The notes under the pieces were generated by a model. It saw only the letters and a list, made by a program, of their open reading frames with translations, made no database searches and had not been told where the DNA came from. Shown here piece after piece: positions 2,520-24,133 of a stretch of 64,000 bases of DNA (within the stretch, counting starts at the first letter, position 1; each line of letters starts with the position of its first letter). The DNA is from Obrimoposthia wandeli (taxonomy: Eukaryota), in NCBI GenBank assembly GCA_977020255.1, contig CDROCS010002814.1, positions 1 to 64,000 on the forward strand, written 5' to 3'. Both the position numbers and the translations under genes were made by a program.

Positions 2520-3460
2520 CAAGTTGTTCCCTGTATAAGGGAATAAATAACCTGGCTATTCTAGATCACAACCGCGACAGGCGCTATTTTCAGTGTTTTC
2601 AGTTCGCTAAAACCTAGCAGAATATATACATATACCGCTAAAACAGTAATACCAAAGAGTATAGAAGATGCAGCGTTAAAATTTTGATTTGCTGTTCAGT
2701 TGTAGTTCATGTTATGAGAGTATTATTTGCTAACTAATTGAATATATTTGCTTTTAAGTAGTTAACTGTACGGGTGTCCCATACTATTTCTATTTTTCCT
2801 TGCGTTTGGGCTCAATAGATAGTGATCTTCAATCAAAAGAACTAAGTCATTTTTGGGTTTCTCAAAAAGCAAATTGGTATTCATATATTAGTAGTTTACC
2901 CGAATATATTGAGTCCGAGTAAAAAACATAATAAGTCAGAGCATTCGACGCTGCAGGCCATCACGAAACTATGAGGCTGTGTTAGCGGGGTTAAGTGCTG
3001 GATTAAAGAGTTTGTATGGAGATTGGGATAGACCGTTTTGAGCAAGGACAATGTGTTTAGTGAACACGAGAGTGGATACCTCGCCATAGTCAAGCTTCTC
3101 TATCTATCATTTTTTTGGAACCCTATAGCCGCTGGAGGTGATCCTCTTATGATAACGTTCCGCCTTTTGACACTGCAAAATTTAAGGTAGGAAACGATCA
3201 GAGGACATTCTTTACTTCAACTAGTATTTCTAATGATTGCATCATGTCGCGCTTGAGTCAGTAAAAATTTTTAAAGTATTGCTTATTCTAAAGATAATAA
3301 AGTTACATTTTAAAATTTTAATTCAGGGAAAGAGCGCTTAATTCCATAGGTAAAAATAATCACTTTGATCAAGCACTTTAGAAGCTCACAACTCAATCTT
3401 TTAATTAATAATTACAATTAATTTTTGCAAAGAATAAATAGAATTAACAGGTGAGAAATT

Positions 3461-21164: not shown

Positions 21165-21318
21165 TCATTGCTGTCCGGTTAAAAAATGTAAGCCCTTTAC
21201 TCATTGATTTGTGGTTTTCTATCATGGAAAAATAGATGTTTTTTAGCTAAGGAGTATTTTCCGTTAACGTAAAATTAATGAGTTAGAGAGCAACAAAAAT
21301 TAAACCAGACACTAATGA
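21165..21318 (+). mobile_element. MITE-like repeat, copy A (154 bp)
   Basis: TIR TCATTGCTGTCCGGTT ... AACCAGACACTAATGA, flanked by TCTAGG on both sides. Homologous to the copies at 25902, 26724 and 54162. Confidence 0.82.
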
Positions 21319-21431
21319 TCTAGGATGAGTTTTAGGGGAGGTTTCCGTCACACCTTTGTGTGAATTTAGTCAGTATTTTTTCATGTGAAGTCCCTTGGTA
21401 TAATTAAGCTGTTGTAAGAAAAATTAAAGGA

Positions 21432-21926
21432 ATGAAAATGATACGTGACGCACAAGAAGAAGATTGTCTTAATTTGGCCGTTTTGAGCTTACAGGTCTGG
21501 CTGAAAACCTATGCGATTGAAGGGATTCGAACTGAATATTCAAAATACGTCATTTCAACTTTTACAGAGCTATATTTTAAGGGTTTACTAGACAATCCGA
21601 ATTACCGTTTGCTAGTGAGCGAAGCAGAAGGGGTTCTTCAAGGCTTTATCCTGATCAATTTAGCGTCTCGCTTTGAAAGCGAAGTAAACGGGTTTGAAAT
21701 TGAAAAACTATACGTACATGAAAAATTTATCGGCAAAGGCTTAGGTCGGCAACTTATTTTCAATATCGAACAAAGGTTTGGAAATAGGTTTTGGTTATAC
21801 ACATGGGTTGAAAACGAATCAAATGAATTCTATAAATACTTGGGTTTTCAAAATATTGGGCAATTAAGCTTTCAATTTAATCATTCAACAATTGTAAATA
21901 ATGTATACGCTTTCAGTCGCGAGTAA
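21432..21926 (+). CDS. GNAT family N-acetyltransferase
   Basis: IEKLYVHEKFIGKGLGRQL acetyl-CoA motif and FYKYLGF. An extended -10 (TGGTATAAT) lies upstream. Confidence 0.9.
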   Translation: MKMIRDAQEEDCLNLAVLSLQVWLKTYAIEGIRTEYSKYVISTFTELYFKGLLDNPNYRLLVSEAEGVLQGFILINLASRFESEVNGFEIEKLYVHEKFIGKGLGRQLIFNIEQRFGNRFWLYTWVENESNEFYKYLGFQNIGQLSFQFNHSTIVNNVYAFSRE

Positions 21927-22004
21927 TATAGGTAGCCACGTAAATTCGTCGACGTACAATTAAAATGTAATATTTCTTCGCAGCAATTGTTACTCAATTA
22001 GCAG

Positions 22005-22149
22005 TTGACATTAATACGCCTACAAAAGATGATGAGCTTATGAATTTAAATCTTACGCAACAAATATTTCGAATTATCATCATTCCATAGGAATGGTGGG
22101 ATTTTTGACGCGTTTTTAATTAGTCAAACCCGCCCAAGAGGCGGGTTTT
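22005..22149 (+). promoter_or_regulatory. Putative ribosome-mediated attenuator: promoter, Ile-rich leader peptide (22040-22090), antiterminator and terminator
   Basis: TTGACA at 22005. The uORF reads MNLNLTQQIFRIIIIP*. Mutually exclusive hairpins end in AAACCCGCC-CAAGA-GGCGGGTTTT (22126-22149). Confidence 0.68.
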
Positions 22150-22192
22150 CTATTTCTGCCTCATTGGATGGTTCTTTGTTCTTGGAGGTAGT

Positions 22193-22723
22193 ATGAAAAA
22201 AATAGCAGTTTTCGGTAAGCCTGGAAGTGGTAAGTCCACTTTGAGTAAAAAACTGGCATTAATGACAGGCATAACATTGTATCAATTAGATTCAATTCTA
22301 TATAAAAAAAACGGAGATAGGGTCGATCGTAAAACTTACGATAGGGAGCATGATGATATATTATCCTCAGATAGTTGGATCATTGATGGTTTTGATCTGA
22401 TTGAACCGTTTAATAAACGATTAGATGCGGCTGATACATTGATTTACATAGACCTACCTTATTTTATAAGCTATTACTTAGTAACAAAGCGACTTTTAAA
22501 AGGTCTGTTGGTTAAGCCTGAAGGTTGGCCAGGTGGTAGTTCTGTTTTGAAAGGCAGTTTGCAAAGCTATAAATTCTTAAAGCTTTGTCCAAAATTTTGG
22601 AACGATGATCTTTTGCAAAGATTAGAAAAAATATCGACGAACAAATCTTTATATGTCATTAGGACCATGTCTGAACTAAATGAGTTCGTCTCAAAGAATT
22701 CGCAGCTTAACCCTCCTAGTTAA
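22193..22723 (+). CDS. Adenylate-kinase-like P-loop protein (FlaR/topology-modulation family)
   Basis: Walker A GKPGSGKST, WIIDG, ADTLIYIDLP. RBS GGAGG. Confidence 0.85.
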   Translation: MKKIAVFGKPGSGKSTLSKKLALMTGITLYQLDSILYKKNGDRVDRKTYDREHDDILSSDSWIIDGFDLIEPFNKRLDAADTLIYIDLPYFISYYLVTKRLLKGLLVKPEGWPGGSSVLKGSLQSYKFLKLCPKFWNDDLLQRLEKISTNKSLYVIRTMSELNEFVSKNSQLNPPS

Positions 22724-23116
22724 ACCAAGATAGTTACATTTATAAAAACGTTTGCTTTGTGTTTTTGGCCCATTGAAATAGACCGTTTTAGTGTAAAAGG
22801 CCCAAAGCAATTGTTTTTAATGTTAACTTTTACTTAGCTGTGAATGACTGTTTACTGAAATTTAATCTGCCTTAAGCATTTTTTAGTTTAAATATTTGAG
22901 CTGTCTAAGCCAACATTAATTTGTAAGCCTTTCAATCTTTTTTTTAATAATCATTCATCTTATTTTTTCTATTGCTTTCATTTGGAGAGTATTTATGTCT
23001 ATTGTGCTCAAATAATTTTTCAATTGTTTTCGTTTATGTGGACATTTGTGTCATTACCTTTTATGGTTAGGGGCTCCATTGAAAATATCTTAATAAAAAC
23101 AAGGGAATAACAATAA

Positions 23117-24133
23117 ATGAAGAAGATTTTATCTACTGCGATCGTATTAGCCGCTATTTCATCAGCTGCAGTATCTGCAGGTACTTTAGAAAACGTTAAA
23201 GAACGTGGCGTATTGAAGTGTGGTGTATCTCTTGGTCTAGCAGGTTTTTCTGTGCCTGATGATGCCGGTATGTGGAAAGGGCTAGACGTAGATTACTGTC
23301 GAGCAATTGCGACCGCTGTATTAGGTGATCCGGCTAAGGTTGAGTTTGTGCCACTTTCATCTAAAGTACGTTTAGAGGTATTAAAATCAGGTGAAATTGA
23401 TGTGCTTTCTCGCACCACAACCTGGACATTCACACGTGATACCAGTTTAGGTCTTAACTTTGCAGGTGTTAACTATTACGACGGCCAAGGTTTCATGGTA
23501 CCGACAGCATTAGGTGTGACTTCTGCTAAAGGCTTAGATGGCGCATCCGTTTGTGTACAAACAGGCAGCACAACAGAATTAAACTTAGCTGAATACTTCA
23601 AGCTAAATGGTATGAAGTATGAATCAGTACCGATTGAATCGCCAGCTGAGGCGCGCCAAAACTACATTGCAGGGCGTTGTGATGTATACACGACTGATGC
23701 TTCTGGTTTAGCTGCACAGCGTTCTGTATTTGAAACGCCAGCAGATCACTTAATATTGCCAGAGATCATCTCTAAAGAGCCTTTAGGTCCAGTAGTTCGC
23801 CACGGCGATGATCAATGGTTTGATATTGTTAAGTGGACTCACAATGTATTGTTAGCTGCTGAAGAAATGAATATTACTTCTAAGAATTTAGATGAGCGCG
23901 GTGCCAATAAAAATGATCCATCTGCGCAAGCACTTTTAGGTGAAGGTAATGCCAAGTTAGGTTTAATGTTAGGTTTAGAGAAAAAATGGGCTTATAACAT
24001 TATCAAAAATGTTGGTAACTATAGCGAGATTTTCGAGCGTAACGTAGGTAAAGAGACTCCGCTGAAATTAGAGCGAGGCTTAAATGCTTTATGGACCCAA
24101 GGTGGCATTCAATACGCACCACCAGTAAAATAA
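23117..24133 (+). CDS. aapJ: General L-amino acid ABC transporter substrate-binding protein
   Basis: GTLENVKERGVLKCGV, GLDVDYCRAIA, RTTTWT, YYDGQGF, ISKEPLGP and GLNALWTQGG. Confidence 0.92.
   Translation: MKKILSTAIVLAAISSAAVSAGTLENVKERGVLKCGVSLGLAGFSVPDDAGMWKGLDVDYCRAIATAVLGDPAKVEFVPLSSKVRLEVLKSGEIDVLSRTTTWTFTRDTSLGLNFAGVNYYDGQGFMVPTALGVTSAKGLDGASVCVQTGSTTELNLAEYFKLNGMKYESVPIESPAEARQNYIAGRCDVYTTDASGLAAQRSVFETPADHLILPEIISKEPLGPVVRHGDDQWFDIVKWTHNVLLAAEEMNITSKNLDERGANKNDPSAQALLGEGNAKLGLMLGLEKKWAYNIIKNVGNYSEIFERNVGKETPLKLERGLNALWTQGGIQYAPPVK

Follow-up and report, generated by a model that had tools for sequence, protein, structure and literature searches.

A probable isoleucine-codon attenuator at the edge of the Rfam P9 family, in front of a P-loop kinase gene on an Obrimoposthia wandeli contig

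The attenuators of enteric bacteria (trp, thr, ilvGMEDA, ilvBN, leu, his, pheA) combine a short open reading frame (ORF), in which several codons for the amino acid to be sensed stand in a row and overlap RNA segment 1, with mutually exclusive helices 1:2, 2:3 and 3:4 and an intrinsic terminator before the regulated gene. The same layout is found in a stretch of 64,000 nucleotides (nt) of the Obrimoposthia wandeli assembly GCA_977020255.1 (contig CDROCS010002814.1, positions 1 to 64,000, forward strand; hereafter the window), where a leader with four consecutive isoleucine (Ile) codons stands in front of a gene for a P-loop kinase. We consider it very probable that this leader is a ribosome-mediated transcription attenuator which reads the supply of charged tRNA-Ile and controls this single gene. 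The proposed mechanism is that of a classical leader-peptide attenuator, and the RNA lies at the edge of an existing Rfam family. Unlike in the enteric systems, the leader mRNA is apparently leaderless, the ORF having no Shine-Dalgarno sequence and a promoter that keeps a fixed distance. Two added segments would extend the decision to the ribosome-binding site of the gene, and a lone, mobile P-loop kinase takes the place of a biosynthetic operon.

The predicted coupling to translation recalls the trp operon of Bacillus subtilis, in which TRAP acts on transcription termination as well as on masking of the trpE ribosome-binding site, a series of alternative structures letting one decision govern the terminator and also a hairpin that blocks the Shine-Dalgarno sequence. 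TRAP, however, is a protein sensor, whereas here the translating ribosome is the proposed sensor and a Shine-Dalgarno mimic lies inside the terminator. With respect to the signal, the nearest functional analogy would be the induction of mupirocin-resistant, type 2 isoleucyl-tRNA synthetase (IleRS2) in Bacilli by a T-box and CodY; under control of the ileS2 T-box, IleRS2 goes up 70-fold with mupirocin (bioRxiv 10.1101/2022.02.09.479832). There, too, a sensor of uncharged tRNA-Ile induces an accessory gene upon inhibition of IleRS, and P9-type leaders, discussed below, precede IleRS2-type genes in six metagenome loci. The T-box RNA, however, binds the tRNA directly, whereas ribosome stalling on Ile codons is proposed as the sensor here, and the gene in the window encodes a kinase and not an IleRS.

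The closest described RNA is Rfam P9 (RF00624), filed as a small RNA gene of unknown function. In Pseudomonas aeruginosa PAO1 it was detected by northern blot as an RNA of ~130 nt, in exponential and in stationary phase, 44 nt upstream of a gene of 405 bp (Livny et al. 2006, PMC1524904). The length of this RNA fits a terminated leader, and the 44-nt gap is nearly identical to the 43 nt that separate base 22149 from the kinase ATG (22193) in the window. P9 and the window leader have in common two hairpins, the logic of GGYGGG / AACCCRCC / GGYGGGUUU and a stretch of Ile codons; indeed, Ile codons can be read in the P9 consensus itself. Positions 22063-22149 of the window align to the whole P9 model with 42.3 bits and an E value of 6e-8, against a gathering threshold of 43 bits, and the leaders of three orthologous kinases (loci L009, L034 and L053) score above this threshold (50.1, 49.6 and 44.6 bits). 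The window leader differs from the core members of the family, which precede the threonine dehydratase IlvA, in its downstream gene and in its own R-IIII-P leader peptide. By its score we class the window RNA as a divergent (fringe) member or subfamily of P9.

The elements of the locus are listed here; the percentages of paired cells, like all pairing percentages below, are based on an alignment of the leader regions of 74 sequences.

22005-22010, + strand: -35 box TTGACA, seen in the sequence and by the promoter scan
22028-22033, + strand: -10 box GATGAT, after a 17-nt spacer from the -35 box
22040-22090, + strand: leader peptide ORF MNLNLTQQIFRIIIIP, 16 codons, probably leaderless; stop codon UAG at 22088-22090
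22073-22084, + strand: four consecutive Ile codons ATT ATC ATC ATT, the proposed sensor, from sequence and conservation
22077-22086 with 22090-22099, + strand: hairpin 1:2, -11.0 kcal/mol, 97.4% paired
22095-22100 and 22104-22109 with 22123-22134, + strand: antiterminator 2:3, -14.9 kcal/mol, 92.4% paired
22126-22155 (22126-22134 with 22140-22148), + strand: intrinsic terminator 3:4 and U-rich tail, -16.5 kcal/mol, 98% paired
22138-22144 (GAGGCGG) with 22156-22162 (anti-Shine-Dalgarno CUGCCUC), + strand: helix 4:5, -12.3 kcal/mol, z -3.8, 98.1% paired
22156-22162 (anti-Shine-Dalgarno) with 22185-22191 (Shine-Dalgarno region of the kinase gene), + strand: helix 5:6, -13.3 kcal/mol, 80.7% paired
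22193-22723, + strand: P-loop kinase/NTPase of 176 amino acids, FlaR/adenylate-kinase-like, from the ORF, family searches and a structure model

An earlier note on this DNA, made from the letters alone, had described the promoter, the small upstream ORF, the Ile codons, helices 1:2, 2:3 and 3:4 and the 43-nt spacing, and on reading the sequence all of them were found where it had placed them. The three helices also fold as predicted, 2:3 being the minimum-free-energy fold of 22091-22136 just as drawn, and none of 200 shuffles folds as well as the terminator. A scan of 21300-23200 for promoters and terminators ranked the TTGACA/GATGAT pair as the top promoter-like site (10 of 12 matches) and returned two terminator-like hairpins, at 22077-22099 and 22126-22148.

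Runs of four Ile codons are not rare by themselves (4 observed in the window, 3.5 expected), and the case therefore rests on their arrangement and conservation. For relatives of the kinase, one genome per species was scanned, which gave 162 stretches, of which the best 80 (64-82% identity) were taken. They cover many gammaproteobacterial families (Vibrio, Photobacterium, Grimontia, Shewanella, Marinomonas, Marinobacter, Colwellia, Paraglaciecola, Rheinheimera, Saccharospirillum, Alkalilimnicola, Endozoicomonas, Pseudomonas marincola) plus the zetaproteobacterium Mariprofundus. Marinobacter zhejiangensis, Marinomonas sp. MED121, Vibrio splendidus and Mariprofundus ferrooxydans PV-1 are among the carriers in culture. 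The earlier note had let its reading hang on conservation of the leader in front of orthologous kinases, and in 73 of these 80 loci a leader of 16-17 codons ending in R-I-I-I-I-P-stop lies ~150 nt upstream of the kinase gene and is followed by the same hairpins; leader, Ile run, helices and promoter spacing are all kept. Variants of the run among orthologous leaders read IITIIP, ITIIP, IIIVP and IITVP. In one further locus (L035) the leader ORF is disrupted, and another locus (L047) is cut by the contig end. Just 5' of hairpin 1:2 the bases CGA ATT A are nearly invariant although they have no structural partner, a sign that the codons themselves are under selection. Directly before the run (22070-22072 in the window, columns 95-97 of the alignment) Arg is almost always encoded by CGA; L011, L034 and L056 use AGA there and continue with ATA, a rare Ile codon. 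A slow codon at the entry of the sensor may have been selected.

The promoter is conserved together with the leader. TTGA of the -35 box is invariant across the 74 sequences, and the distance from this box to the leader ATG is exactly 35 nt in 55 of them and 34-36 nt in 62. Within the set with 35-nt spacing, the hexamer 17 nt past the -35 box has A at position 2 in 55/55 and T at position 6 in 54/55 sequences, and its end lies 6 nt before the ATG. Related leaders in front of genes other than the kinase show a similar layout, with TTGAC ~35-38 nt before their ATG. The fixed spacing and the conserved -10 positions most likely place the transcription start on the A of the leader ATG (22040), so that the leader mRNA would probably be leaderless and translated without a Shine-Dalgarno sequence.

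All three core helices are 92-98% paired, with compensatory changes, in agreement with the covariation that the earlier note had proposed to look for in homologs. When the 3' partners of a helix were shifted by 1-3 columns in the alignment, pairing fell to 32-60% for 1:2, 3:4 and 2:3 (32-50% for 2:3, compared with 92.4% in register). The terminator has one pair that is split between G-C (37 sequences) and A-U (35) and another that is C-G or U-A; changes in helix 1:2, whose segment 1 overlaps the Ile codons, are mostly one-sided. An invariant U of segment 2 (22097) pairs with A in segment 1 and with G or A of segment 3, and this segment-3 partner pairs in turn with C or U of segment 4, a pattern expected if helices 1:2, 2:3 and 3:4 all matter.

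The earlier note had described a classic attenuator of four segments. Its mutually exclusive 1:2/2:3/3:4 architecture stands, whereas the limit of four does not: the predicted switch is one of six segments and would also gate the ribosome-binding site of the kinase gene. The stretch CUGCCUC (22156-22162), conserved beyond the terminator, has two alternative partners, of which GAGGCGG consists of the last two bases of the terminator loop and segment 4, the 3' arm of the terminator, and the other is the Shine-Dalgarno region of the kinase gene. One pair of helix 4:5 is G-C in 55 and A-U in 12 sequences and a second is C-G in 37, U-G in 29 and U-A in 7, with A in the anti-Shine-Dalgarno segment only where segment 4 has U. 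The covariation score of this helix was matched by 0/500 shuffles and its slid controls were 49-68% paired; for helix 5:6, 0/200 shuffles fold as well. Across P9 subfamilies the anti-Shine-Dalgarno segment covaries with the Shine-Dalgarno region of each respective gene.

Transcription would begin at the A of the leader ATG and the 16-codon peptide would be made from the leaderless mRNA. With plentiful Ile-tRNA the ribosome would reach the UAG and cover segment 2, so that the 3:4 terminator could form and a short RNA of ~110 nt would be released; in transcripts that leak through, segment 5 would pair with segment 6 and hide the ribosome-binding site of the kinase gene. With scarce Ile-tRNA the ribosome would stall on the first Ile codons and cover segment 1, 2:3 would block the terminator, and the freed segment 4 would capture the anti-Shine-Dalgarno segment (4:5), exposing the Shine-Dalgarno sequence and allowing the kinase to be made. 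OFF (1:2 + 3:4 + 5:6) and ON (2:3 + 4:5) would thus form a mutually exclusive chain. Segment 1 excluded, they are close in energy (about -30 kcal/mol for OFF and about -27 for ON), and the order of co-transcriptional folding, set by the position of the ribosome, is proposed to decide between them.

Several observations weigh against this interpretation. The -10 box GATGAT is weak, and leaderless translation is rare in gammaproteobacteria. Many of the aligned sequences are related to one another, so that the truly independent changes are fewer than the covariation counts suggest. In helix 5:6 just 81% of cells are paired, and helix 4:5 is unsupported in the largest IlvA subfamily and in the IleRS2 subfamily, with only 8 of 38 non-kinase leaders beating shuffles; as a trait of all P9 leaders helix 4:5 was rejected on this count, and we propose it for the kinase subtype and some other subtypes only. 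The kinase is without a known link to isoleucine, and of the public sequencing runs that hold this genome we found two, both DNA-only, and no RNA run. Four kinase orthologues (L017, L026, L055 and L058) have no leader, and in L020:2880-3010, from a metagenome-assembled genome (MAG) of Thioalkalispiraceae, promoter and Ile leader peptide are kept and segments 3-5, and with them the terminator, are lost. Attenuation is therefore not obligatory.

In L020 the ribosome-binding site of the kinase gene follows almost directly after hairpin 1:2, and this locus probably represents a constitutive form. The kinases of L017, L026 and L055 (around 2740-3000) are closely related to that of the window (69-72% identical) and begin 20-30 nt past the stop codon of a membrane-protein-like gene, that is, in an operon context.

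A metagenome scan with a pattern consisting only of the Ile run, TGGYGGG and AACCCRCC returned 80 loci (L083-L162). Behind the leaders of these loci we found the following.

33 loci: FlaR-like kinase
4 loci: kinase-type leader, contig ends before the gene
18 loci: threonine dehydratase (IlvA), long form with regulatory domains
6 loci: threonine dehydratase (IlvA), short form
6 loci: IleRS of ~1043 amino acids, MupA/MupB-like type 2
5 loci: SnoaL/DUF4440-like proteins of 131-135 amino acids
3 loci: an unrelated AAA_33 P-loop kinase of 164-170 amino acids

According to its ORF list, L152 also contains IlvA, beyond the counts given here. Examples of sister loci behind P9-type leaders are L093:5142-6817, L085:338-3564, L104:442-949 and L106:3267-3875. 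P9 scores of 48-92 bits were obtained for the IlvA leaders, the SnoaL-like leaders and one of the IleRS2 leaders, with the IlvA core members at 82-92 bits. The sister leader peptides, for example MNTFPHVNAIIITAIISLAG, ...GQIIITAIPVMAG and MNSLSITVISIIIIIQHRMVG, differ completely outside the Ile run, which carries an occasional Thr, Val or Ala. That they keep the Ile run alone and precede genes for IlvA and IleRS is the strongest argument for Ile-tRNA as the signal, as the earlier note had proposed, and indicates that the kinase may share a regulon with the enzymes for the committed step of Ile synthesis and for the charging of tRNA-Ile. One IleRS2 gene, that of L112, stands behind a leader which is of the kinase subtype (...QRIIIIIS). 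Since the genes behind its other members code for IlvA, type-2 IleRS, SnoaL-like proteins and a second family of kinases, P9 appears to be a family of isoleucine attenuators serving a mixed regulon rather than a small RNA.

The SnoaL-like proteins fit PA1325 in size and position. PA1325, in an operon with ilvA2, is presumably the 405-bp gene that follows P9 in PAO1, judging from the coordinates and the PAO1 map. In a P. aeruginosa mutant of EF-G (fusA1) no genes are more strongly induced than PA1325-ilvA2, which would fit a switch that reads the progress of the ribosome. In the searchable literature we found no description of P9 as an Ile attenuator, of the kinase leader subfamily, of the leaderless layout, of the extension of the switch to the ribosome-binding site or of a regulon with IleRS2 and three uncharacterised small proteins; literature searches combining an Ile leader with mupirocin, for the ilvA2 leader, and combining topology modulation protein with isoleucine returned nothing relevant.

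Since P9 is listed as a small RNA and was detected as a stable RNA of ~130 nt in exponential and stationary phase, and since the window matches its model, the terminated transcript of ~110 nt might act mainly in trans, its position before the kinase being secondary. We consider this very unlikely, because the element has the marks of one that acts in cis, namely the conserved Ile-run ORF, the exclusive helices and an anti-Shine-Dalgarno segment that fits the gene behind it, and because the genes downstream of family members are related to isoleucine. A role in trans in addition to the one in cis is possible.

The peptide itself could also be the sensor, with R-IIII-P-stop as an arrest motif that responds to a drug or metabolite at the ribosome, in the manner of erm and cat leaders. 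Leaders of the kinase subtype do keep R-I-I-I-I-P-stop to a high degree, the Arg ahead of the Ile run uses the rare codon CGA or AGA, and a C-terminal proline before a stop codon slows termination. Across subfamilies, however, the Ile run alone is kept and the remaining peptide and its end differ completely, and even among the kinase leaders some (L001, L004, L005, L023 and L042) read beyond the UAG to a later stop. CCAUAGG, moreover, forms the loop and closing pairs of hairpin 1:2, so that RNA structure constrains the end of the peptide. As the regulated genes also include those for IlvA and IleRS, we regard an arrest peptide as highly improbable and maintain that the ribosome would stall for want of charged tRNA-Ile.

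Together, the 73 genome loci and the 33 metagenome loci place the leader-kinase unit in more than 100 sea bacteria. The kinase of one of the metagenome loci is just 41% identical, and the leader is likewise present before a kinase copy on a Vibrio megaplasmid (59% identical). The surroundings of the unit vary. All-against-all BLAST of flanking ORFs from 81 regions (the 80 loci and the window) revealed no conserved flanking gene, the largest cluster of shared neighbours comprising at most 9 of the 81 regions, and thus an operon partner is ruled out; a Pfam census of the genes upstream of the unit found 97 families among 78 loci. In a quick maximum-likelihood tree, kinases from different families and orders are intermingled, with Nitrincola, Marinimicrobium, Rheinheimera, Alkalilimnicola, Bermanella and Paraglaciecola in one tight clade. 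From this pairing in unrelated contexts, the lack of fixed neighbours and the mixed tree, leader and kinase appear to be an autonomous, horizontally mobile single-gene module.

Such a module is hard to reconcile with the suggestion in the earlier note that the leader is a relic whose original gene was deleted, here taken as a gene of isoleucine biosynthesis whose loss left the leader by accident before the kinase. The lack of a known role of the kinase in isoleucine metabolism and the sister leaders before IlvA would suit a relic, but the recurrent pairing with the kinase in unrelated contexts, the fixed spacing, the covarying helices and an anti-Shine-Dalgarno segment matched to the ribosome-binding site of the kinase gene itself speak against it, and we reject it as barely credible. 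That the terminator just ends the GNAT acetyltransferase gene, which lies 200 nt upstream on the same strand, and that the small ORF is a chance frame is virtually out of the question, because the upstream genes differ in nearly every locus (GNAT in 4 of the 78) and leader and terminator travel with the kinase regardless. By comparison of these loci, the Ile-codon attenuator in control of the kinase that the earlier note had put forward is strongly supported.

Some further observations concern the setting of the module. In the window the GNAT gene occupies 21432-21926. No clear terminator was found after the kinase gene (22724-23116), and at 23117-24133 there follows a gene for an amino-acid ABC-type binding protein, which has no permease genes next to it and a promoter-like site of its own at 23039-23067. 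A plasmid homologue in Nostoc sp. C052 (L082:2501-3566; 45% identical) has no Ile leader and overlaps the start of a GNAT gene by 11 nt. In L034:2660-2746 (Pseudomonas marincola) and L074:2349-2438 (Endozoicomonas) the module is preceded, at a distance of 130-570 nt, by tRNA genes, which may mark sites of island insertion. Leader and kinase of L056, a MAG labelled Alphaproteobacteria, are nearly identical to those of L034, which reflects either a recent transfer or a binning error. Rows of small genes on the same strand in Vibrio loci had raised the idea of an integron cassette, which was dropped when no repeated attC-like sequences were found.

The kinase has a best family match to PRK08118, the 'DNA topology modulation protein' FlaR, with 93 bits over the full length, below the curated NCBIfam cut-off of 215 bits. 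It is thus related to FlaR but outside the equivalog, and together with its Walker A motif this makes 'FlaR-like P-loop kinase', the label in the earlier note, a fair one. With FlaR and the adenylate-kinase-like proteins it has in common a length of ~170 amino acids, the Walker A motif, a WIIDG strand, an ADT..I.LD.P motif and the nucleoside monophosphate (NMP) kinase fold; the invariant KPEGWPxGSS loop and LCPKFWN are its own. Also invariant are the Walker A motif itself (GKPGSGKS), D33, which belongs to an LDS motif following strand 2, and R46, H53, W62 and R76. Matches to Pfam AAA_18 and AAA_33 are weak and below threshold; the family search gave no match to Pfam ADK, and identity to adenylate kinases is 13-20%. 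Relatives of the kinase number 1441 at E values up to 0.001, of which the top 120 are 74-89% identical. An AlphaFold2 model (predicted local distance difference test score, pLDDT, of 84) has the NMP-kinase fold, and its top fold matches, tied at Z 13.3, are a short adenylate kinase of E. coli and the polynucleotide kinase of C. thermocellum, followed by adenylate kinases and hCINAP (Z 12-13). Given this tie and the generic fold, the fold search gives no substrate call. Among solved structures no close relative was found by sequence, the P-loop region of AK9 being the sole match, and the sister AAA_33 kinase had no match at all; PADLOC defence models returned P-loop noise only.

P-loop kinases whose target is a hydroxyl group, such as shikimate, gluconate and chloramphenicol kinases, typically have an invariant Asp after strand 2. 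In our ranking of candidate substrates, a small-molecule hydroxyl (of an Ile-related metabolite or an IleRS inhibitor) would come first, a nucleotide second and a 5'-OH of RNA third. Phosphorylation of an IleRS inhibitor or Ile analogue, as suggested in the earlier note, is one possibility among several. A wider form of this idea would make the kinase, the sister AAA_33 kinase and the SnoaL-like protein inducible resistance enzymes that inactivate natural inhibitors of IleRS, such as the mupirocin/thiomarinol-class compounds of Pseudomonas and marine Pseudoalteromonas, with the Ile leader as a sensor of target inhibition. This would account for a self-regulated single gene, for its mobility, for its commonness in the sea and for a type of leader shared with an IleRS2 of the mupirocin-resistant type; for now we consider it rather unlikely.

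For the family, these results would change the reading of P9 from a small RNA of unknown function to a family of isoleucine attenuators whose regulon appears to comprise, besides threonine dehydratase and type-2 IleRS, small uncharacterised proteins of three kinds. The kinase subtype would go beyond the textbook attenuator in its apparently leaderless leader and in a chain of six segments through which one stall sets both read-through and access to the ribosome-binding site. In its hosts, a well conserved and horizontally spread kinase would have its expression tied to the charging of tRNA-Ile, and its job should therefore be to relieve or to exploit a shortage of Ile-tRNA. If it does modify an inhibitor of IleRS, it would represent a new resistance mechanism with a built-in sensor.

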